A stretch of 64,000 bases of DNA, taken from assembly GCA_977020255.1 (NCBI GenBank), contig CDROCS010000321.1, positions 1 through 64,000 on the forward strand. Direction: 5' to 3'. The first letter of the stretch is position 1. Each line of letters starts with the position of its first letter. The notes beneath the pieces are model-generated. The model saw only the letters and a list, made by a program, of their open reading frames with translations, did no database searches and had not been told where the DNA came from. This stretch comes from Obrimoposthia wandeli. Lineage: Eukaryota. This document shows, one piece after another, positions 1 through 20,501 of this stretch. The position numbers were made by a program, and so were the translations under genes.

Positions 1-59
1 TGCTCAAGTCCAATCTCTTTATACAATAAATCATACACGAAATGCAGGAATTTGAATAA

Positions 60-1346
60 ATGGCAGAAGCAATGCAGAAAGGTTCTAACATTCAATTAGA
101 CAAAGTAATTAGCGGCGATATTAATCGAGTATTTGTAGGCGTTGGTTGGCATGATTCGAACAAAGAAAAACCGCATGGAGTCGATGTTAGTGCTTTTTTT
201 GTAGGAGATAATGATAAGGTCAGAAATAATGAGGACTTTATTTTTTACAACCAACCCAATGACAACAATAATGCAATTTCACTGATAACGGCGCCTTTAA
301 ATAATCATGATTTGCAGGGGTTCAGTATTTCATTGTCTTCAATTCCGAGTAAGGTTTCAAAAATTGTTTTTTGTATAACCATAGATGAAGGGAGCTCACA
401 AGAGTCAACATTTGATTCTATCAGTAACCTGTATATCAGATTACTTGATGGCACGTTCTTAGGTAAAGAAGTACTAAATTACCAAATTTCAGATACAGGC
501 TCGCTCAAAGCTTTGATGTGCGCTCAATTGTATATTCACAATGGAAATTGGAAGTTCAAGGCCGTTGGACAAGGCTTTGATGGTGGTTTAGAGGCACTAG
601 CAAACCATTTTAATGTGACGGTCAATTCTGTTTCCGAAGAGGTGGAGGAAGAGAGTGTAGGGCTAAAGCATAAAAGAAGAAGTTCTCAAGATATTCTGGA
701 TCAATATGCTGTAAAGATGCGTTCAGAGATGTCTAGGCTCATACCTCAAGTAGATGCGGCAACAAAAAATAAGCTTAATGAATCAAATACTAGAATGTTG
801 GTTGATCGAATACTTATGGATGTTCTTGGGTATAACATTGATGAAATAAAAGCGGAACAAAATATTGAAGGGAGAAGAGCTGACTACGTACTATCAGTTG
901 GAGATAAAGAGTCATTGGTTGTTGAAGTTAAAAAAGCTGGTTTGCCGCTTAAAAGTCAGCATATATTTCAAGCAACCTCATACGGTGCTTTTTCGGGTAT
1001 TGAGTGGGTGCTACTTACTAATCTGAGAGATTGGAAACTGTTTAGAATTACTTCCGGTTCAAAAGTCGAAGCAGAACATCTATTTACTGTCACATTAAAT
1101 GATAGTTTTGATAAATCGATGAATGATAATTTTGCATTGATTTCGAGAGTCGGGATGGAGCGTCCTAGCTTATTGCTTAAAGCTTGGAATAAAGTTAATG
1201 CGCTAAGTGATAGTAACGTGATAAACGCGATCTTATCACCAGAGGTCTTGGCAAAAATAAGATCCAATATCAAAAGAGAAAGTTCAATTTCAGTAGAGAT
1301 TGAAAGTGTTCGAGATGTCGTTGAAAAATTGTTGAATATTGATTAA
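60..1346 (+). CDS. TerD-domain protein fused to a C-terminal HsdR-N-like (PD-(D/E)xK) restriction endonuclease domain
   Basis: N-terminal ~190 aa is TerD-like (VFVGVGW, DVSAF, FIFYNQ, YIHNGNWKFKAVGQGFDGGLEALANHFNV). C-terminal part has NESNTR...ILMDVLGY...E...RADY...VVEVKK...QATSY...WVLLTN, typical of HSDR_N-type nuclease domains. Confidence 0.8.
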   Translation: MAEAMQKGSNIQLDKVISGDINRVFVGVGWHDSNKEKPHGVDVSAFFVGDNDKVRNNEDFIFYNQPNDNNNAISLITAPLNNHDLQGFSISLSSIPSKVSKIVFCITIDEGSSQESTFDSISNLYIRLLDGTFLGKEVLNYQISDTGSLKALMCAQLYIHNGNWKFKAVGQGFDGGLEALANHFNVTVNSVSEEVEEESVGLKHKRRSSQDILDQYAVKMRSEMSRLIPQVDAATKNKLNESNTRMLVDRILMDVLGYNIDEIKAEQNIEGRRADYVLSVGDKESLVVEVKKAGLPLKSQHIFQATSYGAFSGIEWVLLTNLRDWKLFRITSGSKVEAEHLFTVTLNDSFDKSMNDNFALISRVGMERPSLLLKAWNKVNALSDSNVINAILSPEVLAKIRSNIKRESSISVEIESVRDVVEKLLNID

Positions 1347-1466
1347 AAGCTAATAAATGACAGCTATATATATCTTATTTTGGCATGGGTTCATTACCGT
1401 TTTTAGTATCACGGATATGAACCTATATGGTTCTAGTTTTATTGCGGGTTTATACTGTAAAAGACA

Positions 1467-1892
1467 AGAAAGAACACTTGATAGCGCTGTTTCTTAGTGC
1501 CATTGATGACTTTACTTATTTGAGCGGGCGTCAAGATGTCGGGCAGGACTTATTTGAGCGGACGTCAAGATGTCGGGCAGGCGTTTCACTTGCGGTGGTT
1601 TAACAATATTGAGCCATTCCCACTGCTTGTCGAGGGTATAACGATAGAAAAACTGCAAGCCGTTACGATCTAATTTAACGGTGCTCCAGGAATGGGTTTG
1701 GATCAGGCTATTGAAGTAGTCCTTTAAATCAGCAGTAGTTAATCCGTCTGGTGATTTATCGAAATACGCACTAATCCGTCGAACTGCACGAGAATAAGCG
1801 TCAATGGTCGCAGGTCGTTTACCTTGCAACCTTAAGTTCGTAAGGTGTTGTTCATAAAGAACATTGAATAGTTGTTGTTGTGAGTGGTTCAT
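1467..1892 (-). pseudogene. Tyrosine recombinase N-terminal (SAM-like) fragment
   Basis: MNHSQQQLFNVLYEQHLTNLRLQGKRPATIDAYSRAVR matches the 4069-4956 protein. Frameshifted by a 34-bp tandem duplication (1514-1547/1548-1581) and truncated. Confidence 0.9.
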
Positions 1893-1986
1893 ACTGATTA
1901 CTCCAATAAGGCACCACGAATGGTGATGCTATTGGTAAGTATGAACGATGGCTTATTTACTCTGCCGCGTAGCGGCTTCGTTCAAC
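1467..1986 (-). mobile_element. Truncated, diverged copy of the recombinase/IS91-like element (right end plus 5' part of the recombinase gene)
   Basis: Clear nucleotide similarity to 4565-5049; ends in GCGGCTTCGTTCAAC like the intact copy. Confidence 0.9.
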
Positions 1987-2104
1987 AAATGCATCAACAC
2001 GATTTACTACACTCGGCATCTCAGGTTGTCGGGTGTTTCTCGTTTTAAGGCGTCAATTTTAAGTATAATTGTGTAGTAGTAAACGTGTTATGCAGGCGTT
2101 ATAA
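1980..2104 (+). other. attC site (125 bp)
   Basis: R'' GTTCAAC (1980-1986), L'' CATCAACA with an extra C versus L' TGTTATG, inner arms TTTACTACAC / GTGTAGTAGTAAA, R' GTTATAA (2098-2104). Confidence 0.9.
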
Positions 2105-2129
2105 GCTTCTAGCTTCCAGAGGTATAAAA

Positions 2130-2762
2130 TTGAAGAATTATTTTGAAAGTCCTTTTGCAGGTAAGTCTCTAAAAGAGCAAGTGACGAATCCAAATATTAT
2201 AGTGGGTGAGCACAGTTATTATTCTGGTTATTATCATAACCATAGCTTCGATGATTGTGCACGTTATTTACTTGCGGATAGGACAGATATTGATCAGCTA
2301 ATTATTGGCAGTTACTGCTCAATTGGTTCTGGTGCTGTGTTTATGATGGCTGGTAATCAAGGACATCAAAATAGTTGGGTTAGTACGTTTCCATTTTTCT
2401 ACCAAGACAATGAAAACTTTGCTGATGCTAAAGATGGTTTTGAGCGTTCGGGTGATACGGTTATTGGTAATGATGTGTGGATTGGCACTGAAGCTATGAT
2501 TATGAGTGGCGTATCTATCGGAGACGGTGCAATTATCGCAAGCCGTGCAGTTGTTACTAAGGATGTTCCACCATATTCAATAGTAGGTTCAAATCCAGCA
2601 AAACATATACGAAACAGGTTCAATGATACTGAAATCATACAGCTGTTAGAGATGAAATGGTGGGAGTGGAGTGAAGAACAAATTAAGGGGGCAATGGGCT
2701 TAATGTGTTCTTCAAATATTGGTGGTCTTTATGATTATTGGAAAACGTTAGCACGCTTATAA
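2130..2762 (+). CDS. catB: Type B chloramphenicol O-acetyltransferase (CatB/xenobiotic acetyltransferase) gene cassette
   Basis: MKNYFESPF...[19 protein letters not shown]...[21 protein letters not shown]...[12 protein letters not shown] hexapeptide repeats. Likely TTG start at 2130 after an AGAGGT RBS. Cassette bounded by GTTATAAGC and GCTTATAAC. Confidence 0.92.
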
Positions 2763-2811
2763 CAAATAAGAATAGGTGTCGCGCAGCCGACACCTTATTC
2801 GGGTGTTGAAC
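2757..2811. other. 55-bp attC-like hairpin (host R'' plus element left end)
   Basis: TTATAAC-AAATAA-GAATAGGTGTC-GCGCAGCC-GACACCTTATTC-GGGT-GTTGAAC; the stem has one extra base in its right arm. Confidence 0.8.
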
Positions 2812-3010
2812 AAGCCCGAGCTCTTCTTTATATAGTAAATTACGAGTTTGATCTTGATAGCACTGTCTTGGGCTAAATCCAAGACGAAAGGAAATTGAGA
2901 TAAATAACAGACCTGTTATTTATCAATTGATTAGCTAGTCTTAACCATGAAGTTCAATACCTCCAGTTCATATTCTTAATGCCATTATTCCTATTATGTT
3001 CGCCTTTCGG

Positions 3011-4072
3011 CTAGGTCGTTCGCGTGATACCAACACACCTCATTTCATGCTGACAGCAAGGACAAATACGGATTGCTTTGCTTGGTGTGGTTGCCGCGAG
3101 TAACGGCATTTTCCAATTGAACAGATGCAGTAATATGACTTGAATACGCACGCGTAACCGCTTGGCATTACCGTGTAAAAAACCATAATCTCTCACTCGC
3201 TGTAGTCCTTTTGGCAATACATGCTGCAAGATTAGCCAGAGGAATTTCAGCGTTGGTAAGATTCTGGTTTTCGTTGCTTGAGTTTGCCCGTCTTTATAGT
3301 TGAAGGTCACGGTATTATTGCTTGTGTCGATGATGTCTTTATCGGGCAATACGCCACGATATAAATAGCGTGACAGATATTGTAAGGCGGGAAGACCGTA
3401 ACCGACTTTGCGGCAATCAACGACCCATTTAGTGGGTAATGTGCCAGTGTTCGCGAGAGATAAATCAGCGTGCCGATTGATTGCATCAATCATTCTAGCT
3501 CGCCAGACTTTAGCCAGTGCAAAGGCGTTAAACAGATAGTTACTCTTACCTTTATGCCATTGGTTGCGCATTTTATTGTAGCTCCCACTGGCGACTATAA
3601 TGTGTAAGTGGGGATGTAAATTACGTTTCCTGCTGTGAGTATGCAAAACGGTGGTGAAGCCAATTTCACCGCCGTTTCTACGTTTAGCAAAATCCTTCAA
3701 TACCGATGCAGCAACTGAAAACATAGATTGATATAGCGCCTTGGATTGCGAACGCGCAAGCGTTCGTAACTCATAGGGCAAAGTGAACGTGACCATAAAA
3801 TAATGTACGGGTAGTAATTTTGATTGCTGACGCATGAGCCAATCAGAAGTGGTGCGCTGTTGGCATTGTGGACAATGGCGATGACCGCAAGAAAGTGGCA
3901 TTCGATCACCATGTTGGCAGTGATGGCAAAGCCATTGCGAGCAACCTTGGTTACTCGTTTTGCAACTGAGCATGGCGTAAATGGCGCGGCGACTATCATG
4001 TGAGAGTTGATTGCCATATTCACTTTCAAACTCTTGATGATGTTGACGAAGCAAGTCAATGAACGTACTCAT
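3011..4072 (-). CDS. IS91-family HUH (Y2) transposase
   Basis: N-terminal Zn-binding Cys cluster (SCKT...CHHC...SCGHRHCPQC), HUH motif LHPHLH, YLSRYLYRG tyrosines, RVRDYGFL, C-terminal CPCC. The ATG at 4072 overlaps the recombinase stop (ATGA). Confidence 0.92.
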   Translation of the reverse strand: MSTFIDLLRQHHQEFESEYGNQLSHDSRRAIYAMLSCKTSNQGCSQWLCHHCQHGDRMPLSCGHRHCPQCQQRTTSDWLMRQQSKLLPVHYFMVTFTLPYELRTLARSQSKALYQSMFSVAASVLKDFAKRRNGGEIGFTTVLHTHSRKRNLHPHLHIIVASGSYNKMRNQWHKGKSNYLFNAFALAKVWRARMIDAINRHADLSLANTGTLPTKWVVDCRKVGYGLPALQYLSRYLYRGVLPDKDIIDTSNNTVTFNYKDGQTQATKTRILPTLKFLWLILQHVLPKGLQRVRDYGFLHGNAKRLRVRIQVILLHLFNWKMPLLAATTPSKAIRICPCCQHEMRCVGITRTT

Positions 4073-4956
4073 TTCAAGCTCCAATCTAACGCTAACTTGT
4101 CAGCAAGGTGATTAATAGCGACCGCTGCATCTCGCTGTTTAAGTTGGGTTAGCTGCGTATATCGAGCGGTAGTATTGAGACTGGCATGACCAAGTAACAC
4201 TTGCAGCGAACGTAAGTCTAAACCATTTTCCAGCAAGTGAGTCGCAAAGCAATGACGTAGCGAATGGGGGCTAACGAGTTTATTGATATTACAATCACGT
4301 AAAACTTGTTTGATGGCTTTTTGAATGCCACCTTTATCCATCGGCGAGTTCATGCCGTTGCCAAGTCCAGGGAATATCAATCGTGCGTGATGGTGCGTTT
4401 GCCAATGACTGCGTAGCGCGTGCAGGGTTCGTTTTGGCAATGGCACCAATCTATCTTTGCCGCCTTTAGCTTCGCGGATATGCACTTGCATGGTCTGGCT
4501 ATCGATGTCATGAACCGTCAGGTTTAAGCCTTCACTTAAACGCAGACCCATGCTGTAAAGGGTGAGAAAGAACACTTGATAGCGCTGTTTCTTAGTGCCA
4601 TTGATGACTTTACTTATTTGCGCTGGCGTCAAGATATCGGGCAGACGTTTAACCTGTGGAGGTTTGACGATGTTGAGCCATTCCCATTGTTTATCAAGCG
4701 TGTAGCGATAGAAAAACTGCAAGCCGTTACGGTCTAATTTAATGGTGCTCCAAGAGTGAGTTTGGATAAGACTGTTAAAGTAATCCTTTAAATCAGCCGT
4801 TGTTAATCCATCGGGAGACTTATCAAAGTAAGCCGAAATACGTCGAACCGCACGAGAATAGGCATCAATAGTCGCTGGTCGTTTACCTTGCAGCCTTAAA
4901 TTGATAAGGTGTTGTTCATAAAGAAAATTAAATCGTTGCTGGTGTGAAGTGTTCAT
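4069..4956 (-). CDS. Tyrosine recombinase (phage-integrase family with N-terminal SAM-like domain)
   Basis: Catalytic set intact: GLRLSE (R), KGGK (K), HSLRH (HxxR), LLGH (H), TARY (Y). Lacks the IntI-specific insertion. Confidence 0.92.
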   Translation of the reverse strand: MNTSHQQRFNFLYEQHLINLRLQGKRPATIDAYSRAVRRISAYFDKSPDGLTTADLKDYFNSLIQTHSWSTIKLDRNGLQFFYRYTLDKQWEWLNIVKPPQVKRLPDILTPAQISKVINGTKKQRYQVFFLTLYSMGLRLSEGLNLTVHDIDSQTMQVHIREAKGGKDRLVPLPKRTLHALRSHWQTHHHARLIFPGLGNGMNSPMDKGGIQKAIKQVLRDCNINKLVSPHSLRHCFATHLLENGLDLRSLQVLLGHASLNTTARYTQLTQLKQRDAAVAINHLADKLALDWSLK

Positions 4957-5042
4957 ACTGAATCTCCAATGTCACCACCCTAATGGTGATGCTATTGGTA
5001 AGTATGAACGATGGCTTATTTACTCCGCCGCGCAGCGGCTTC

Positions 5043-5141
5043 GTTCAACAAGTTACTCAAACGGACGCTAAACAGTTGGCTAGCACTCGTTCCTCGTACA
5101 TTTTAGCCAACAATTTCGCGCCGCTTAATAAGGCGTTATGA
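5043..5141 (+). other. attC site (99 bp)
   Basis: R'' GTTCAAC, inner arms GTTGGCTA / TAGCCAAC, ends ...CCGCTTAATAAGGC GTTATGA; R' contains the ATG of the next cassette. Confidence 0.88.
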
Positions 5142-5668
5142 GTATTGGAGATTCCGTGGTATTCAAATATTTTCGTGATCCTGAAAATTTTGCATTTAAG
5201 ATTGATTCAGAATCAACATGTTCGATATGTGATAAGTCTGGCATATGGCTAGATGCTGAAGGTTACAGTGGCATAAATGAAATCAAGTGTATTTGTGATG
5301 AATGCCTTTCAGTCGGAAAATTGCTTCCTTTGGAAATATCAGCCAATCAGGTTGATATTGAGTCCAAAAATTCAGATGAAATTATCTATCGAACACCTGC
5401 TTTACCAAGTTGGCAAGATCAAGTATGGCCATACTTAGATGAAGACTATTGTGTTTTTGAAAAGCTTGCTTCTAAATTAGATTTTTTAGATAAAAATCAA
5501 TTTAAACAGTCATTTTCAGACATTGACCAAAAAACTTCCGATCTTGATTGGCTTTGGGATATGTTGCCAGATACTATTGTTTCAAATTTGGAAGATGGTA
5601 ACTATGATGTTTCTGTATATTTGTTTTCTAGAAATGACATAAAGCATTGTACTTGGGATGCGAATTAA
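5138..5668 (+). CDS. CbrC/UPF0167-family protein gene cassette
   Basis: FKYFRDP, CSIC, CICDECL, RTPALPSWQ motifs; bounded by GTTATGAG and CTCATAAC. Confidence 0.7.
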   Translation: MSIGDSVVFKYFRDPENFAFKIDSESTCSICDKSGIWLDAEGYSGINEIKCICDECLSVGKLLPLEISANQVDIESKNSDEIIYRTPALPSWQDQVWPYLDEDYCVFEKLASKLDFLDKNQFKQSFSDIDQKTSDLDWLWDMLPDTIVSNLEDGNYDVSVYLFSRNDIKHCTWDAN

Positions 5669-5671
5669 TAC

Positions 5672-5726
5672 TCATAACAAATAAGAATAGGTGTCGCGCA
5701 GCCGACACCTTATTCGGGTGTTGAAC
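5672..5726. other. Second 55-bp attC-like hairpin (host R'' plus element left end)
   Basis: After TCATAAC the sequence is identical to 2764-2811. Confidence 0.8.
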
Positions 5727-5928
5727 AAGCCCGAGCTCTTCTTTATATAGTAAATAACGTGTTTGATCTTGATGGGCACTTCGTCTTGGGGCTAAATCCA
5801 AGACGAGCGAAATTGAGATAAATAACAGATCTGTTATTTATCAATTAATTAGCCAGTCTTAACCATGAAGTTCAATACCTCCAGTTCATATTCTTAATGC
5901 CATTATCCTTATTATGTTCGCCTTTCGG

Positions 5929-6395
5929 CTAGGTCGTTCGCGTGATACCAACGCACTTCATTTCATGCTGACAGCAAGGGCAAATACGTATTGCTTTGCT
6001 TGGTGTTGTTGCTGCGAGTAACGGCATTTTCCAATTGAACAGATGCAGTAATATGATTTGAATACGCATTCTCAGCCGTTTGGCATTACCGTGTAAAAAA
6101 CCATAATCTCTCACTCGCTGTAGTCCTTTTGGCAACACATGCTGCAAGATTAGCCAGAGGAATTTCAGCGTTGGTAAGATTCTGGTTTTTGTTGCTTGAG
6201 TTTGCCCGTCTTTATAGTTGAAGGTCACGGTATTATTGCTTGTGTTAATGATGTCTTTATCGGGCAATACGCCCCGATATAAATAGCGTGACAGATATTG
6301 TAAGGCGGGAAGACCGTAACCGACTTTGCGGCAATCAACGACCCATTTAGTGGGTAATGTGCCAGTGTTCGCGAGAGATAAATCAGCGTACTCAT
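5929..6395 (-). pseudogene. IS91-family transposase pseudogene
   Basis: ~595-bp deletion joining copy-1 positions 3469 and 4064 through a CGT microhomology; removes the Zn-binding and HUH motifs. Confidence 0.9.
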
Positions 6396-7310
6396 TTCAA
6401 GCTCCAATCTAACGCTAACTTGTCAGCAAGGTGATTAATAGCGACCGCTGCATCTCGCTGTTTAAGTTGGGTTAGCTACGTATATCGAGCGGTAGTATTG
6501 AGACTGGCATGACCAAGTAACACTTGCAGCGAACGTAAGTCTAAACCATTTTCCAGCAAGTGAGTCGCAAAGCAATGAGGGGGCTAACGAGTTTATTGAT
6601 ATTACAATCACGTAAAACTTGTTTGATGGCTTTTTCCTCTTATTTCAAAAAAATCCGCCTTTATCCATCGGCGAGTTCATTCCATTACCGAGTCCAGGGA
6701 AGATTAATCGCGCATGATGATGGGTTTGCCAATGGATTCGGAGTGCGTTCAGTGTTCGTTTGGGCAATGGCACTAATCTATCTTTACCGCCCTTAGCATC
6801 GCGGATATGGACTTGCATAGTTTGGCTATCAATATCATGAATAGTCAGATTTAAACCTTCACTTAAACGCAGACCCATGCTGTAAAGGGTGAGAAAGAAC
6901 ACTTGATAGCGCTATTTCTTAGTGCCATTGATGACTTTACTTATTTGCGCTGGGGCCAAGATATCGGGTAGGCGTCTACCATTATCTGAAAATAAGGCGG
7001 CGGCTTAACGATATTGAGCCATTCCCATTGTTACTCTTTTTTGCAATATGAGCGTGTAACGGTAGAAAAACTGCAAGCCGTTACGGTCTAATTTAATGGT
7101 GCTCCAAGAGTGAGTTTGGATAAGACTGTTAAAGTAATCCTTTAAATCAGCAGTTGTTAATCCATCGGGAGACTTATCAAAGTAAGCCGAAATACGTCGA
7201 ACCGCACGAGAATAGGCATCAATAGTCGCTGGTCGTTTACCTTGCAGCCTTAAATTGATAAGGTGTTGTTCATAAAGAAAATTAAATCGTTGCTGGTGTG
7301 AAGTGTTCAT
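6392..7310 (-). pseudogene. Tyrosine recombinase pseudogene
   Basis: ~10-bp deletion in the HSLR codons plus several short insertions (near 6635, 6980 and 7035) split it into three ORF pieces. Confidence 0.9.
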
Positions 7311-7397
7311 ACTGAATCTCCAATGTCACCACCCTAATGGTGATGCTATTGGTAAGTATGACTGGTGGGGGTAATTACTCCGCCGCGTAGCGGCTTC

Positions 7398-7452
7398 GTT
7401 CAACAAGAAATTCCTGCAGACGCCTACGGCGCAGCTGAATTTGGCGTTATGT
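7398..7452 (+). other. attC site (55 bp)
   Basis: GTTCAAC-AAGAA-ATTCCTGC-AGACGCCTACGGCGCA-GCTGAAT-TTGGC-GTTATGT. Confidence 0.85.
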
Positions 7453-7475
7453 ACTAAAGCGAAAGAGGGAATTTA

Positions 7476-7874
7476 ATGATACCACAAACAGCAAAAATGA
7501 GAGTCGCTAGACCAACGGATAATCTTGATAAAATCACAGATATGTATGTGAATGGTTTAGGTTTTCAGTTATTAGGGGCTTTTGAAAATCATAATGGTTT
7601 TGATGGTTCAATCATTGGACATGAGAAGCATAGCTACCATTTAGAGTTTACTCATCATAAAGGTAAGGTGGTAGGTAAAGCACCAACTCAAGATAATTTG
7701 CTTGTGTTCTATTTTTCAGACGACAACACATGGAAGGAATGCTGTAAAAAAATGGTGTCAGCTGGTTTTTTAGTTGTTCCCTCCTACAATAATTATTGGG
7801 ATGTAGTTGGTAAAACGTTTGAAGATATGGATGGCTATAGAGTTGTCCTTCAAAATAGAGAATGGAGTGTATAA
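7476..7874 (+). CDS. VOC-family (YycE-like glyoxalase) gene cassette
   Basis: MRVARPTDNL...GLGF...NHNGFDG...YHLEFT...QDNLLVFY...TFEDMDGYRVVL; follows an attC R'. Confidence 0.85.
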   Translation: MIPQTAKMRVARPTDNLDKITDMYVNGLGFQLLGAFENHNGFDGSIIGHEKHSYHLEFTHHKGKVVGKAPTQDNLLVFYFSDDNTWKECCKKMVSAGFLVVPSYNNYWDVVGKTFEDMDGYRVVLQNREWSV

Positions 7875-7879
7875 AAAGC

Positions 7880-7956
7880 ATCGCCATCAAAAGTCGCTTC
7901 CCGTTTACCTTGCAGTCTTAAATTGATAAAGTGTTGTTCATAAATAAAATTAAATC
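7880..7956 (-). mobile_element. Remnant of the element recombinase 5' region
   Basis: Degenerate match to 4860-4935 (gtcgct...cgtttaccttgcagtcttaaattgataaagtgttgttcataaa). Confidence 0.75.
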
Positions 7957-7985
7957 TAAGTGTAGATATCTTAAAAGGAACAACA

Positions 7986-8558
7986 GTGAACCACATTTCC
8001 TCAAAACTACTTCTATTATCAACATTACTGCTTAGTGGCTGCTCTGTAATTACTTACGAATTACGTGATGAGTTGCCTGAATCTAAGCAAATAGCGACGT
8101 GTGATATCGCATTTACTTTATCACTGCAAAGCGAAGCGAACACTAATACGTTTGGTGATGTCGAGCATGCAGATGAAGAACGTAACAGCTTAAAGCAGGA
8201 CTATATCGCTTCAACGCTAAACACCTTAGATGAACTTGGCTGCGAAGCTACACTTGCGTCAAATACAGCAGAGAGTAACTTCTCAATTGTGGTATCACGC
8301 GATCTGCAACTAAGCGCGCTGCCGCAAGAGTTTTTAACGGGACTGTCGCTGGGTATTATCCCAAGTTGGGGCACTAAGTATGGCCAGTACAAATATACAT
8401 TTACTCGCAATAGCGGTGAGTCTTATAGCTACAACATAGACCAAGACAACTATAACCACCTTGTATTGTTTCCGGTGTTTTGGGTGTCGTACTTCACTGC
8501 TAACGAACAAGATATTTATAACGATGCGTTAATCAATTTCATTCGTAGCGCTCCGTAG
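7986..8558 (+). CDS. Hypothetical lipoprotein
   Basis: 190-aa ORF with a lipobox-like LLLSGC signal; no family recognised. Confidence 0.7.
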   Translation: MNHISSKLLLLSTLLLSGCSVITYELRDELPESKQIATCDIAFTLSLQSEANTNTFGDVEHADEERNSLKQDYIASTLNTLDELGCEATLASNTAESNFSIVVSRDLQLSALPQEFLTGLSLGIIPSWGTKYGQYKYTFTRNSGESYSYNIDQDNYNHLVLFPVFWVSYFTANEQDIYNDALINFIRSAP

Positions 8559-8612
8559 ATAGTTAAATTTCGACTTTTCCATATTCAAACGCTTCGATAT
8601 CTCAATCAGTAA

Positions 8613-8710
8613 TCGTTACCTTGCACTTTTAAATTTATAAGGTGTTGTTAATAAATAAATGAAATCGTTTCTTTTGTAAGTTATTCATACTGAATATTCC
8701 AATAAGGCAC
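8613..8710 (-). mobile_element. Remnant of the element recombinase 5' region and upstream leader, lacking the right terminus
   Basis: cgttaccttgcac...ggtgttgttaataaa...ttcatactgaatattccaataaggcac matches 1817-1915 and 4880-4975. Confidence 0.75.
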
Positions 8711-9057
8711 ACTCGGTCTATTCAAGTTAGTGATTTAGGTTGTAATTGGATGATTTAACCTCAAATGATTCCTACAGCCTATTATCTACCAACAAACGTC
8801 CCCAAAGACTCAGCCGTTCTAGTCTAGATTAAGTCATATGACAAAATATGTGACCTTATCCTATAAAAATTAAAATTTTTTATTTATACCATCATTTGTG
8901 ATCTATTCTTTTAAAACTAACGTACTGTATTTTATTGCATTGTGTTGTCTTCATATTAATGACGATACTCAATATTGGGGCAATTCCAAAATGAATACTC
9001 TCTGTGATTACGAAGGGAGTTGTGGGCTTATAAAGATAAACTTGGGATATAACATAC

Positions 9058-12000
9058 ATGACAGAGTTAAAACTGGATTGCCACAATGGCGATAATATTG
9101 TTGATTTATTTCGAAGCCAAATAGATCTACACGGAACAAATACAGCCGTATCTTTCCAAGATAGAAGCATTACCTATCAGCAACTTGGTGAAAAAAGTGT
9201 AGCGCTAGCATTATATTTACAACAGCAGGGCGTCTGTGTAGACGGATGTGTTGGCTTATTTGTAGACCCGTCAATTGAGTTAATGGTCGGTGTATGGGGA
9301 ATTTTACAGTCTGGCTCTGCTTATTTACCGTTAGCCCCCGAATATCCAGATGACCGTCTAAAATACATGCTTGAAAACAGCCAGTGTAAAATTATTGTAG
9401 TGCAAGATGAGTTAGTGGAACGACTGGCTACCCTCGTTTTAGATGATGTCGTATTAATAACATTTTCACAGGTAACTCACTTTTTCATCACCAAACAAAC
9501 ACCTCAATATTATATGCTCACACAGCATGCCGCATCACATAACTTAGCGTATGTAATTTACACATCGGGCAGTACAGGTAAACCAAAAGGTGTGATGATA
9601 GAACACAAAAGTATTGCTAACCAAATGGATTGGTTATCGACTCATTTTTCATTAGATTCTAAAAGTGTTGTTTTACAGAAAACACCAATGAGCTTTGATG
9701 CTGCTCAGTGGGAAATTCTGTCCTCATGTTGCGGAGCTCGGGTTGTCATGGGTGAGGCGAGCATATATAAAAATCCTGAGAAACTTGTAGATGCCATGAT
9801 GCATCATGACGTTTCAATGTTACAAGGCGTACCTACTTTACTACTCGCGCTACTCAATGTTGAAAAGTTCACCCTATGTACTTCGCTAACTCAAATATTT
9901 AGTGGCGGTGAAGCGCTGTCAAAACACCTTGCCAATGAACTTTCAGCGCAATTACCGCATTGCAGTATTATTAATTTATATGGGCCAACTGAGTGCACGA
10001 TCAACAGTTCAGCTCATATTGTTGATATTAAAGAAACTCAAGATAGTGCTGATACTATTTCTATTGGTAAACCTATACAAAATACACAGTATTATATTTT
10101 AAATAAGGATATGAAACCTGTCGCTGTAGGCGATATTGGTGAACTTTATATTGCTGGTGTCGGTTTAGCGAGAGGTTACTTACATCGTGATGATTTAACT
10201 GAAGATCGTTTCATAAGCCATTTTTTTGATGATCAAGAAATAAGTCAAAGACTCTACAAAACGGGTGATTTAGCTTATTGGAATGAAAATGGTTCGGTGC
10301 AATATTCAGGTCGAGTTGATAACCAAGTTAAGCTTCGAGGCTATCGCGTTGAATTAGATGAAATTAAATCCATAATAGAAAGTCACGACTGGGTAAATAA
10401 CGCTGCGGTATTCTTGAAGAAAGACCAGTATACCGGTTACCAAAACCTTATCTCGATGATCGAATTAAATCCCAGAGAAGCGGCGTTGATGGATCAAGGT
10501 AATCACGACCCCCATCATCAATCTAAGAAAAGTCGTAGCCAAGTTAAAATGCAGTTAACGAATACCGGTTGCCGCCAAGATGCTGAAATAGTGAATAAAT
10601 CAATAATTGATTTACCGGGTAAAATAGCGACCGAAAAACAACGGAAGCTTGTATTTTCCCGTAAAAGTTATCGTTTTTTTGAGGGTGGGAATATCACTAA
10701 AGCAGATATCCTTAACGTACTCAACCGTAAAGTAAATTACGATCATTATGCTAAATTATCCGATCTTAACTATGCTGATTTTGGTCGTATTTTAAGGTAT
10801 TTTGGCCAGTTCCATTCTGAGAATAGATTGTTACCTAAATATGGTTATGCGTCACCGGGTGCCTTGTATGCAACTCAAATGTATCTTGAATTAAGTGGTA
10901 TTGGAAACCTGACCCCTGGTTATTACTATTACCATCCAGTGCATCACCAATTAGTACTGCTTGCTGAGAAAGAATTTGCTGAAAAAGAGCTTGCTGAGAA
11001 TGAAGCCACTCACAATAAAAATAGCTGCACGGTACAATTTAAAGTGCATTTTGTGGGAAAAAAATCGGCCATTGAACCCATATATAAAAATAATATTTTA
11101 GAAGTATTAGAAATGGAAGTTGGTCACATGGTTGGATTTTTCGAAAATATCTTACCAAATTATGGTTTAAGTATTAAATCCAGCGATTACGTGCCCAGCA
11201 CAATGCAATTATTTGAGGTCGAGCAAAACGATTATTACCTTGGTAGCTTTAACATAGTGTCTGGTACTAAAGACGTCATGAATGATGATGTCAGCTTGTA
11301 TTTACAAGCTCATCCAGGGCAAGTATCAGGGCTTAAAGCCGGTAAATATTTGTATGAAAACGGTGAGTTAGAATACGTATCTAGTGAGATGATTTTAAAG
11401 AAACATGTTATTGCCATTAATCAATCTGTTTATGAAAGAGCTTCATTTGGGATTTCCGTTCTAAGTACAACGGATGAGCATTGGTTGGGATACATAAACT
11501 TAGGGCGCAAGTTACAATCGTTACAGATGAACGATTTTAATATTGGTTTCATGTCTTCAGGCTACAGCTCAAAAACGGGTAATAATCTACCATCAGCTAA
11601 GCGCATCCAGCATATTCTTAATAAAGATGTAGGGCCGTCATATTTCTTTATCGGCGGTCTTATCAGCGATGAGCAAATACTCAGTGATGGTATGAATGAA
11701 GATGTAGTTCACATGAAAGGACCATCAGAAATTATTCAAGATGATCTGGTCAAGTTTCTGCCAACTTATATGATGCCAAATACAATTAAAGTGATAGATA
11801 AAATGCCATTAACTGTCAATGGAAAAATAGATATTAAGGCGTTGCTTACGGTAGAGACTGATTGTATCCACGAGGAACATATCGAACCTGCAAATGACGT
11901 TGAACGTGTGGTATTAGATATTTGGAAGAAAGGCTTAAACAGAGACTTAATTTCAGTTAATACGGACTTTTTTGAACTCGGTGGTAATTCACTTATCGCT

Positions 12001-12909
12001 GTGAGTGTTATCAATAAAATAAATACAACCTTGTCTTGCGACTTACCATTACAAATAATTTTTTCTTCTCCAACAATTCAAAAGTTAGCACAAGCTGTTA
12101 ATCAAAAAGAGGATGATTCAGCGTCGCGGTTAGTCCCTTTTCAAGTAAAAGGTAAGGGGAGTCCCATTTACTGCTGGCCAGGATTGGGGGGATATTGTAT
12201 GAATTTGCGATTGTTGTCTGAAAAATTGGGTACAGACCGCGCTTTTTTTGGTGTGCAAGCATATGGTATTAATGTCGGAGAAACCCCTTACCAAACGATA
12301 AGCGAAATGGCTGCCAAAGATGTTGCGATGATAAAGCAAAATCAGGGCGAAGGTCCTTATACGTTATGGGGGTATTCATTTGGTGCACGCGTTGCTTTTG
12401 AGGCTTGTTATCAATTAGAGCAAGCTGGCGATGTCGTTGAAAACTTATACTTAATTGCACCAGGCTCACCGAAAGTAGCGGTTGGACATAGCTCAAGTGA
12501 AGATAGCGAAGCAACATTTACTAACAAAAAGTTTTTAACCATATTGTATTCGGTATTTATGGGGACGATAAAGAGTAATTCATTAATAGAGTGTTTGTCT
12601 GTTGTGGATACCAAAGACAAATTTATTCACTTTATCTGTGAGTTGAATAACCAACTCGAAACCGGTTTAGTGATGCGGATCATCGATATAGTCACGATGA
12701 CTTTTGAATTTACCTACTCGTTTAGTGAACTCAGACAGCGTCAATTAAAGGCGCCTATTAAAATCATTAAAGCGACCGGAGACGACTATTCATTTATTGA
12801 AAATAATAACGTTTTCTCTATCACTGAGCCTGTTATAGAAAAAATTGCAGCAAACCATTACACCATGCTTAAAACAACACATATTGATCAACTTGTTGCT
12901 GTTTTATAG
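9058..12909 (+). CDS. indC: Single-module NRPS A(Ox)-T-TE, indigoidine synthetase (IndC/BpsA type)
   Basis: 1283 aa. A-domain motifs YVIYTSGSTGKPKG, FSGGE, YGPTE, YKTGD; specificity residues read DAWQFGLINK (Gln). Embedded Ox domain (SRKSYRFF, YASPGALY), T domain DFFELGGNSL, TE WGYSFG. Confidence 0.9.
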   Translation: MTELKLDCHNGDNIVDLFRSQIDLHGTNTAVSFQDRSITYQQLGEKSVALALYLQQQGVCVDGCVGLFVDPSIELMVGVWGILQSGSAYLPLAPEYPDDRLKYMLENSQCKIIVVQDELVERLATLVLDDVVLITFSQVTHFFITKQTPQYYMLTQHAASHNLAYVIYTSGSTGKPKGVMIEHKSIANQMDWLSTHFSLDSKSVVLQKTPMSFDAAQWEILSSCCGARVVMGEASIYKNPEKLVDAMMHHDVSMLQGVPTLLLALLNVEKFTLCTSLTQIFSGGEALSKHLANELSAQLPHCSIINLYGPTECTINSSAHIVDIKETQDSADTISIGKPIQNTQYYILNKDMKPVAVGDIGELYIAGVGLARGYLHRDDLTEDRFISHFFDDQEISQRLYKTGDLAYWNENGSVQYSGRVDNQVKLRGYRVELDEIKSIIESHDWVNNAAVFLKKDQYTGYQNLISMIELNPREAALMDQGNHDPHHQSKKSRSQVKMQLTNTGCRQDAEIVNKSIIDLPGKIATEKQRKLVFSRKSYRFFEGGNITKADILNVLNRKVNYDHYAKLSDLNYADFGRILRYFGQFHSENRLLPKYGYASPGALYATQMYLELSGIGNLTPGYYYYHPVHHQLVLLAEKEFAEKELAENEATHNKNSCTVQFKVHFVGKKSAIEPIYKNNILEVLEMEVGHMVGFFENILPNYGLSIKSSDYVPSTMQLFEVEQNDYYLGSFNIVSGTKDVMNDDVSLYLQAHPGQVSGLKAGKYLYENGELEYVSSEMILKKHVIAINQSVYERASFGISVLSTTDEHWLGYINLGRKLQSLQMNDFNIGFMSSGYSSKTGNNLPSAKRIQHILNKDVGPSYFFIGGLISDEQILSDGMNEDVVHMKGPSEIIQDDLVKFLPTYMMPNTIKVIDKMPLTVNGKIDIKALLTVETDCIHEEHIEPANDVERVVLDIWKKGLNRDLISVNTDFFELGGNSLIAVSVINKINTTLSCDLPLQIIFSSPTIQKLAQAVNQKEDDSASRLVPFQVKGKGSPIYCWPGLGGYCMNLRLLSEKLGTDRAFFGVQAYGINVGETPYQTISEMAAKDVAMIKQNQGEGPYTLWGYSFGARVAFEACYQLEQAGDVVENLYLIAPGSPKVAVGHSSSEDSEATFTNKKFLTILYSVFMGTIKSNSLIECLSVVDTKDKFIHFICELNNQLETGLVMRIIDIVTMTFEFTYSFSELRQRQLKAPIKIIKATGDDYSFIENNNVFSITEPVIEKIAANHYTMLKTTHIDQLVAVL

Positions 12910-19523: not shown

Positions 19524-19941
19524 AAACAATAATAGGTGTCGCGTAGCTGCCACTTAAGTCATTCGAGTGATCCAAAAACATGTCATTTCATGGTGGTAGC
19601 AAAAACCGATGAGTTTTGTTTTAATCATGTTTTACCATGCTGTATTCCAATTTCATAGCGGCATCAATATTAGTTAAATTCGTAATTTAAACGCTTTCGT
19701 ATTCCCCGTAAAAACCATAATCCCTTAGTCGTTGAAATTCAACATACTGCGCTAGAATAACCATAAATGGTAACTGAGCGTTTACCTTGCAGCCTCAGGT
19801 TGATAAGATGTTGTTCATAAAGAAAATTAAATTATTATTGTAAATGATCCATACTGTGAACTTGAATAAGACATCACCATAATGGTGATGTTATTGGTTA
19901 GTATGACTGGTCGGGTAAACTCTGTAGCGTATTCGTTCAAA
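19524..19941 (-). mobile_element. Highly degenerate ~420-bp internally deleted derivative of the element, retaining both ends
   Basis: Left end aaacaataataggtgtcgcgtagc after acataat, a transposase scrap reading RLRDYGFLRG on the minus strand near 19705-19735, the recombinase leader, and a right end ...ttcgttcaa. Confidence 0.7.
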
Positions 19942-20033
19942 AATATGTTTAAGCGTAACTAAAAAGTTGGTTAGGTTCCGCTTCGCTACACATAATAACT
20001 AACTATTTTATTCCGTTTAACGCGGTATTATAT
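19935..20033 (+). other. Degenerate attC site
   Basis: GTTCAAA...aagttggttag...taactaact...ccgtttaacgcggt ATTATAT; same architecture as 5043-5141 with mutated R boxes. Confidence 0.6.
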
Positions 20034-20048: not shown

Positions 20049-20501
20049 ATGGAAGATGTAAAATACTTGTGGTTAAAATTTAACGAATATTCTAATAAGC
20101 TTACCACTGAGCTTGGGCGTACGAGTAATGTTGTCGGCGAGTATGCTGAATATCTTGCACATAAATATTATGGTGGCAAATTATTAGAAATCTCTGGTGC
20201 TAGCGCTGATATAGAGTCCACAGATGGTAATCTTTACCAAATTAAATCTCGAAAAATTAAAGGTTCTCCTTCAACTCAGTTGAATGTTATTAGGTCATGG
20301 GATTTCGATTTTTTGGTTGTAATATTATTCGAGACCTGTGGCGCTATTAAAAAAGCAGTTGAAGTACCAGTAGATGTAGCTAAAGAATACGGAGCAGAAA
20401 ATAGTCATCAGAATGGCTGGGTCATAACAACAAGCCAAAAATTTCTAAATGACCAACGAGTAAAAGATATTACAGCCTCCTTATCTATTTTGAACAAATA
20501 A
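20049..20501 (+). CDS. Small PD-(D/E)xK-like nuclease-fold protein, cassette-like
   Basis: VGEYAEYLA...ADIESTDGNLYQIKSR pattern (E...D...QxK); followed by a degenerate attC left half at 20503-20540. Confidence 0.6.
   Translation: MEDVKYLWLKFNEYSNKLTTELGRTSNVVGEYAEYLAHKYYGGKLLEISGASADIESTDGNLYQIKSRKIKGSPSTQLNVIRSWDFDFLVVILFETCGAIKKAVEVPVDVAKEYGAENSHQNGWVITTSQKFLNDQRVKDITASLSILNK

Follow-up and report, generated by a model that had tools for sequence, protein, structure and literature searches.

An IS91-type insertion sequence with a tyrosine recombinase gene that very probably targets the R'' box of integron attC sites

Introduction

Among the gene-capture platforms that underlie multidrug resistance, integrons are the most important. 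To our knowledge, no more than two kinds of element have been recognised that home specifically to integron attC sites, namely IS1111-attC elements and group IIC-attC introns. A further element was found in a DNA stretch of 64,000 nt from the Obrimoposthia wandeli assembly GCA_977020255.1 (contig CDROCS010000321.1, positions 1 to 64,000 of the forward strand), and this whole stretch is called the window below. The element carries genes for an IS91-family HUH transposase and, upstream of it, a tyrosine recombinase. It is very probably an IS91-family insertion sequence (IS) that is specialised to the R'' box of attC, where it is always inserted antisense and without target duplication. Judged by sequence, it is a third and mechanistically different kind of integron-specific parasite, in which an HUH transposase and a Xer/IntI-like recombinase are combined in an element located at attC R'' boxes and which is widespread in marine Gammaproteobacteria.

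The IS1111-attC elements have a DEDD transposase, a double-stranded circle and a different insertion point within attC. They share with the present element that they are insertion sequences with a fixed orientation in attC, and their orientation-specific insertion has been described for the IS110 family (PMC9229058). Group IIC-attC introns are located between a cassette gene and its attC and are antisense to the cassettes (PMC3001079). This gene-proximal antisense position and the integron specificity are common to the introns and the present element; however, the introns are retroelements with a ribozyme and a reverse transcriptase, they use the bottom-strand stem-loop of attC as a target for RNA-DNA pairing and they have no HUH or tyrosine enzyme.

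An IS91 subgroup with an upstream tyrosine recombinase of unassigned role is presumably catalogued in ISfinder, and ISShvi3 and ISSod25 are the names which we take to belong to it. For IS91, it was described that no target duplication is produced, that a target tetranucleotide lies beside oriIS downstream of tnpA, that subterminal palindromes are present at both ends and that an upstream open reading frame (ORF) overlaps the start of tnpA; experiments showed that only the single-stranded circle of the bottom strand is inserted (PMC13181058). A preliminary description of the window had named ISShvi3 as an IS91 member with such a recombinase. The literature bore out that ISShvi3 of Shewanella is IS91-like and has been seen beside attC, in a one-line remark (PMC9229058), and confirmed nothing more. 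Beyond this remark, no account of IS91-type elements aimed at attC sites was found in the full-text literature, with ISfinder outside the search, and a search on ISSod25, ISAzo26 and similar names gave nothing relevant.

Insertion at attC R'' boxes

The preliminary description had placed the left junctions of the element directly after the AAC of R'' boxes and its right ends in GTTCAAC, followed by attC remainders of 125, 99 and 55 nt. All of these positions were found to be correct. Copies A and B (Table 1) are 95-97% identical starting from 2764 and 5679, directly behind the boxes TTATAAC and TCATAAC. The GTTCAAC box ends at 1986, 5049 and 7404, and each time a different and unrelated attC remainder follows (1980-2104, 5043-5141 and 7398-7452 with the GTTCAAC box included). 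In silico removal of the element, joining 2757-2763 to 5050-5141 and 5672-5678 to 7405-7452, restored plausible native attCs as proposed, in the form of hairpins with 6/7 R-box complementarity.

For comparison, a protein-guided scan with one genome per species produced 74 loci from approximately 12 genera, among them Moritella, Psychromonas, Pseudoalteromonas, Colwellia, Pseudocolwellia, Vibrio, Photobacterium, Aliivibrio, Rheinheimera and Thaumasiovibrio, together with a metagenome-assembled genome (MAG) of Desulfobacteraceae. The same boundaries were common to 48 left and more than 50 right junctions in these other genomes. When the flanks of 25 complete copies were joined, each gave an uninterrupted site of the form YTAAC/AAG...GTTRRRY (the slash marks the insertion point), with the cut inside AAC/AA of the R'' box and no duplication of the target site. 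A total of 18 rebuilt sites belonged to one family of ~92 nt and could be aligned; compensatory changes were observed at 16 of the 24 pairs and these sites are therefore genuine attCs. A covariance model for attC was built from this alignment. It replaced two earlier scorings, of which the arm-duplex energy compared with AACAA controls discriminated poorly (AT-rich arms) and the single-hairpin minimum free energy filter was too strict.

The covariance model identified 76 attCs, 73 in the loci and three in the window. The attCs were on the strand opposite the transposase for 72 of the 73 in the loci, and those of the window were likewise antisense to the element. The ter end of the element formed the R'' box in 27 of the 76 attCs, all in one orientation, and the 49 free attCs showed the native consensus YTAAC-AAG. 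The left flanks were attC in 33 of 44 assessable cases by the covariance model or a constrained fold, and in approximately 38 by eye, so that the homologues were not mostly inserted at unrelated sites. At least four attC families, including attCaadA1, were used as targets and the insertion position within attC was the same to the nucleotide. One position and one orientation in attCs of differing sequence were thus found, as expected of a mobile element specific to attC. Together with the domain assignments and with constant ends between variable attC flanks in approximately 12 genera, the antisense position at R'' upholds the initial reading of an IS91-like element that targets attC rather than a cassette that carries its own. 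The agreement is far beyond chance, because the boundaries are shared by 48 left and more than 50 right junctions, the 27 occupied attCs have one orientation and a filled and an empty attCaadA1 site are available for comparison.

The filled attCaadA1 site shows that the element has already entered a class 1 integron; the plasmid concerned, RCS41_p (NZ_LT985243, locus L075, 3900-6240), is a conjugative IncC plasmid of Escherichia coli. The relative found there has a transposase with 56% identity and the same 4-nt overlap between its genes, is antisense to aac(6')-Ib3, aadA2, cmlA1 and aadA1 and is placed between aadA1 and qacEdelta1 (-sul1). Its junctions are ...TGTCTAAC/AAATAAGG... and ...GGCTTCGTTCAAC/AATTCGTTCAAGCC..., and the empty allele in R100 reads uninterrupted as ...TGTCTAACAATTCGTTCAAGCC.... 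The insertion therefore lies inside AACAA of the attCaadA1 R'' box, without duplication and far from the IntI1 crossover in R', and the comparison with an empty allele that the preliminary description had proposed agrees with its boundary at R''. RCS41_p was the only plasmid with a full copy among 72,556 plasmids, and more than 2500 records had an empty attCaadA1 site. The ori end of the RCS41_p relative was 95% identical to a stretch on a plasmid of Shewanella sp. ANA-3.

On the virulence plasmid pPHDD1 of Photobacterium damselae (L077, 292-4800), the element was found in a Vibrio-type attC of ~125 nt. A group II intron reverse transcriptase gene was located 0.8 kb away and the locus thus holds two different attC parasites. 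At locus L037, a newer copy was inserted at the junction of R'' and the ori end of an older copy, which shows that hybrid or junction-like sites themselves serve as targets.

Element ends and crossover position

Outside the ter and ori ends, all sequence varied among the loci. In the orientation of the transposase gene, the left (ter) end is constant and reads GTTGAACGAAGCCGC-loop-GCGGC, with an invariant stem and a variable loop of 3 nt in the 48 junctions. The right (ori) end consists of ...GGGCTTGTYCAAC, a spacer, a 12-bp stem with one bulged base and then TTRTTT. The ori hairpin was kept in more than 45 variants with compensatory changes; its stem was present in at least six sequence types, compensatory changes affected 7 of 15 pairs and the bulge was retained. 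In copy A, the inner box GTTGAAC (2805-2811) and the ter end form the inverted repeat GTTGAACAAGCCCG. Subterminal palindromes are thus present at both ends as at oriIS and terIS, covarying in the ori hairpin and invariant in the ter stem. A short target motif beside oriIS downstream of tnpA, with a related motif at the end of terIS, was found in all loci (YTAAC and GTTCAAC). The layout noted in the preliminary description, a target tetranucleotide followed by oriIS and a terIS with a similar tetranucleotide, matches the IS91 rules (PMC13181058).

Irregular ori termini were observed at a few loci. The terminus was tandemly duplicated in Pseudoalteromonas (L008, 7287-7370; 42 nt with the whole hairpin) and in Colwellia (L074, 6590-6640; 12 nt), for which slippage or re-initiation at ori are possibilities. 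In Psychromonas L020 (7288-7340) and L044 (11098-11160), the ori terminus enters a short unit with ATGGACTCCCT, present twice in L044, which replaces GTTA and the flank. At L052 (8390-8470), the ori hairpin and GTTGAGC-AAG are joined almost directly to an attC remainder, an arrangement that resembles a footprint and would result from deletion of the whole body between directly repeated GTTSAACAAG boxes.

Integron integrases cut at AA/C. The boundary of the element had been set directly after AAC; the R'' box was borne out, and the exact point had to be shifted by at least 1 nt as the first base of the ori end travels with the element. In three lineages, Psychromonas OY821666 (five or six copies), a second Pseudoalteromonas type (three copies) and L040, all copies read TAAT and not TAAC on the cassette strand (in the orientation of the transposase, the first base of the flank is A rather than G), and C is the last base of the free attCs in the same genome. 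The last R'' base therefore belongs to the element. The crossover is therefore located between T and C of TAAC, 1-3 nt to the left of the first boundary, and this interval includes AA/C.

On the strand antisense to the transposase, the ter-ori junction was predicted to fold into a hairpin of 55 nt (z = -5) with a 7/7 R box (RYYYAAC paired with GTTRRRY), an internal loop, a 12-bp stem and a bulged T on the 3' arm. In this predicted fold the junction has the geometry of an attC bottom strand, and the perfect mimicry with all seven R-box pairs is an addition to the preliminary description. A circular form with one attC-like hairpin, complementary R boxes and an extrahelical base is also what a gene cassette would have, and the ter-ori junction shows all of these with one conserved bulge. 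In situ, the stems and the AAC and GTT triplets of the hybrid sites were kept and only 3-4 of 7 R-box pairs. The earlier claim that an attC is rebuilt on each side is thus formally right, and the function of these sites is doubtful.

The only natural variants of the R box (inner GTTGGAC or GTTGAGC, terminal C>T) all produce G·T on the displaced strand and A·C on the other. In the ori stem, 18 G·T and 9 A·C were counted, these being counts of sequences and not of independent events. The bias is suggestive, not decisive, for the strand antisense to the transposase as the folding one. The predicted circle junction is GTTCAA/CAAATAAG. The predicted sequence GTTCAAC/AAATAAG was found in the metagenome contig OJFP01002730 (L080, 2445-5054) as a head-to-tail tandem, which consists of a complete element and ~300 nt from the start of a second copy whose ori end is identical; a ParE toxin-antitoxin pair comes next. 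The tandem may have arisen by insertion into a copy already present or as a rolling-circle product of more than unit length, and its junction does not prove circle formation.

Encoded proteins

The copy A transposase has the N-terminal zinc-binding domain and the HUH/two-tyrosine catalytic domain of the IS91 family. It scored 361 bits with NCBIfam NF033538 (cutoff 125), and the motifs HTH (HUH) and YLSRY are readable in its translation. The stop codon TGA of the recombinase gene overlaps the ATG of the transposase gene by 4 nt (ATGA, window 4069-4072) and the same overlap was present in all relatives checked (L075 4899-4902; L077 3498-3501). Both genes are intact in copy A and in the E. coli and Photobacterium relatives. 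The catalytic residues R139, K164, H231, R234, H257 and Y266 of the recombinase were invariant across 20 distinct homologues. With the integron-integrase model TIGR02249 the recombinase scored 162 bits, below the cutoff of 265, and matched in two stretches around a missing insert, so that the additional domain specific to IntI is lacking. The closest PDB match was the XerC-like 4a8e. From these matches the recombinase is assigned to the Xer/IntI superfamily and is not an IntI. A distant pair of a recombinase and an IS91 transposase also exists in Herpetosiphon.

Overall, the element shares with the IS91 family (IS91, IS801, IS1294) the transposase domains, the absence of duplication, the arrangement of oriIS and target, the palindromes, a ter motif that resembles the target and an overlap with an upstream ORF as in orf121-tnpA. 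It differs from IS91 in its target, which is the attC R'' box (YTAAC/AA) instead of CTTG or GTTC anywhere, in its upstream ORF, which is a Xer/IntI-like recombinase with intact catalytic residues instead of Orf121, and in a ter-ori junction that mimics attC.

Proposed mechanism and alternative explanations

From the point-by-point match with IS91 anatomy, we infer that the HUH transposase releases the strand antisense to its gene as a single-stranded circle. The enzyme would nick the ori end, displace this strand and stop at the ter hairpin and GTTCAA/C; such release of a circle was shown experimentally for IS91. The ter-ori junction of the displaced strand would then fold in vivo into the hairpin of ~55 nt that resembles an attC bottom strand, with its perfect R box and one bulged base on the 3' arm. 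Finally, a single strand exchange, at AA/C of the R'' box on the cassette-sense strand or just ahead of it, would join the circle to the target attC, and replication would fix the insertion; the junctions give the position of this step and its chemistry is presumed. The attC would be split into two hybrid sites with most of the R-box pairing lost. The full chain of three steps is considered to have even odds. An attC-targeting element of IS91 type that acts through this chain is the best explanation as a whole, with a probability of approximately 0.55.

For the strand exchange, we lean towards the Xer/IntI-like recombinase of the element rather than the transposase alone, because its catalytic residues are invariant, the junction mimics a whole attC, the crossover is IntI-like and XerCD with the CTX phage offers a precedent. 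In the CTX phage, XerCD acts on a folded single strand and a rolling-circle HUH protein supplies that strand. The pathways of IntI cassettes and of CTX with XerCD would have in common with that of the element a folded single-stranded hairpin, RYYYAAC and GTTRRRY boxes, a bulged base, the AA/C crossover, the exchange of one strand and fixation by replication. In contrast to both, the recombinase is encoded by the element and is without the IntI-specific extra domain, the partner is a top-strand R'' box, which gives the inverse orientation, and the pathway is predicted from sequence. A strict division of labour, in which the transposase only makes the circle and the recombinase performs an integron-type exchange at AA/C with the top-strand R'' of a resident attC, is put forward tentatively, at somewhat below an even chance. 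If true, it would be a self-encoded mirror image of cassette (or CTX-phage) integration that lets an IS colonise integrons, and attC halves may be reshuffled between cassettes.

Several observations weigh against this explanation. No circle, excision or empty-site joint was found in public runs, these being short assembled contigs, and the insertions at L014, L016 and L078 are outside recognisable attCs. The bulge of the junction is bottom-strand-like, yet the junction is joined to the target top strand, unlike in the symmetric reaction between two attCs that IntI performs. In addition, the R-box pairing of the junction may be merely the terminal inverted repeats of an IS, no covariation was observed between the inner box and the invariant ter box, and the asymmetry between G·T and A·C is weak and its counts are not independent. 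The remaining objections are also those that speak for a pure IS91 mechanism, in which the HUH transposase would both make and insert the circle, reading YAAC/AA on exposed single-stranded attC top strands, and the recombinase would stand in for Orf121, be it in regulation, as a helper of termination, as a targeting factor that binds attC or in the resolution of multimers, without any strand exchange. In IS91, TnpA alone suffices to insert the single-stranded circle and the effect of the upstream ORF, which overlaps the start of tnpA, is confined to modulation of transposition and of terIS precision (PMC13181058), so the recombinase need not be an integrase. All three cleaved sites (ori, ter and target) share the short motif YAAC/AA, recognisable by an HUH enzyme alone, AAC alone is kept at some non-attC insertion sites, and the ter hairpin is 8-9 nt ahead of the cut, which is typical for HUH nick sites. 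This mechanism has a real share of the probability, clearly short of even. However, a 6-nt motif is expected ~2000 times per genome, yet ~75-85% of the insertions are in attCs, no catalytic residue of the recombinase varies among the homologues, and the mimicry of a whole attC by the junction (R boxes, spacing and bulge) goes beyond the needs of an enzyme guided by a tetranucleotide.

Decayed copies make the window arrays look like graveyards and a few sites are not attCs, as would be expected if insertion occurred at any YAACAA without structural targeting and copies survived in cassette arrays as neutral ground. Intergenic YAACAA sites outside arrays should then outnumber attCs, yet they hold a small minority of the insertions; the position in attC is identical to the nucleotide, and the sole plasmid insertion among the 72,556 records is again in an attC, which makes survival on neutral ground very improbable. 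The lowest probability of all is given to an ordinary gene cassette, with the constant hairpin as its own attC and the host integron integrase as the enzyme that moves it, even though the unit is formally bounded by core sites of G/TT type, its circular form would have one perfect attC-like site and ISShvi3 beside attC was described as a new cassette structure (PMC9229058). A cassette would begin at G/TT of R' or of attI, follow the array orientation and carry a distal attC. Instead, the unit lies at the R'' end and not at the IntI crossover in R', for attCaadA1 with experimentally known strand polarity, and its orientation is opposite to that of the array in each of the 27 occupied attCs detected by the model and in attCaadA1, where canonical bottom-strand recombination would give cassette orientation. 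Both of its ends have IS91-type features and some insertions are without any attC. The R'' position, the uniform inverse orientation and the non-attC insertions together exclude a cassette moved by the host IntI. A normal cassette in minus orientation was considered separately. It is formally consistent as R boxes are near-palindromic, and it was rejected since the bulges of the flanking attCs are on the 5' arm of the cassette-sense strand; the opposite orientation of all neighbouring ORFs and attCs and the unambiguous attCaadA1 case also ruled it out.

With the attC-targeting element, the tyrosine recombinase found in one IS91 subgroup, so far unexplained, acquires a concrete and testable role. 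The element would also be a natural example in which an HUH enzyme and a tyrosine recombinase cooperate on folded single-stranded DNA. Because an insertion comes between a cassette gene and its attC and damages both R boxes, cassette mobility should be frozen or rewired. A tool for attC-directed insertion is conceivable by engineering.

Cassette array and element copies in the window

Positions 1-8800 of the window form a cassette-array-like region in which every cassette ORF is on the plus strand, and the repeated units of the element are on the minus strand between these ORFs (Table 1).

Table 1. Features of the cassette array and of the element copies, with positions counted from the first nucleotide of the window
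Feature	Position	Strand	Remarks
TerD-domain protein	60-1346	+	Cassette ORF
Copy C	1452-1986	-	Ter-proximal ~535 nt only; recombinase N-terminus; 80% identity to copy A
attC remainder after copy C	1987-2104	+	R' at 2098-2104
Hexapeptide acetyltransferase	2085-2762	+	Cassette ORF
R'' box TTATAAC, attC of the acetyltransferase cassette	2757-2763	+	Half-site left of copy A; ORF stop TAA at 2760-2762
Copy A	2763-5048	-	Intact, with recombinase and transposase genes; position after boundary refinement (first boundary 2764-5049)
Ori end of copy A	2763-2818	+	Terminal C/AAATAA; stem 2770-2781, loop 2782-2787, stem 2788-2800 with bulged T; inner box GTTGAAC 2805-2811
IS91-family HUH/Y2 transposase	3011..4084	-	Likely ATG start 4072; Pfam Zn_Tnp_IS91 (PF14319) and Y2_Tnp (PF04986)
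Xer/IntI-superfamily tyrosine recombinase	4069..4956	-	295 aa; Pfam Phage_int_SAM_4 and Phage_integrase
Ter end of copy A	5027-5049	+	Hairpin GCCGC-GCA-GCGGC (5027-5039), TTC, GTTCAAC box (5043-5049)
attC remainder right of copy A	5050-5141	+	R' GTTATGA 5135-5141; ~92-nt attC family; covariance model 98 bits
UPF0167/CbrC	5138-5668	+	Cassette ORF
R'' box TCATAAC	5672-5678	+	Half-site left of copy B; after the stop of the CbrC cassette ORF
Copy B	5679-7404	-	Decayed; without ~586 nt (copy A 3472-4057); recombinase gene with indels
attC remainder right of copy B	7405-7452	+	R' at 7446-7452
Glyoxalase-fold protein	7476-7874	+	Cassette ORF
Relic of recombinase gene, 5' part	7877-7956	-	80 nt; at the expected attC position of the glyoxalase cassette
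Lipoprotein	7986-8558	+	Cassette ORF
Relic of recombinase 5' region	8616-8710	-	~90 nt; distal array end
Sixth copy	19524-20033	-	Heavily deleted; ori hairpin relic, scraps of both genes, ter relic GTTCAAA ending at 19941, then attC remainder

The sixth copy has ACATAAT as its R'' box and an attC that scored 63 bits, and is located just upstream of an ORF at 20049-20501. There is thus another small cassette cluster at this position, 11 kb away from the main array. No intI was found within the 64-kb window, and the array may be either a CALIN or the distal end of a chromosomal integron. An ORF of 1283 aa (9058-12909) directly follows the array end. In addition, an attC type of 125 nt with a double R' (GTTATGY-AGGC-GTTA) adjoins the ter end both in the window (1987-2104) and in a Psychromonas MAG (L044, 8417-8535), with 84% identity between the two. 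The first 45 nt of this pair are nearly identical, a conservation above that of the neighbouring element interior; co-mobilisation of this attC type past ter, or its use as a hot target in both genomes, may be the reason.

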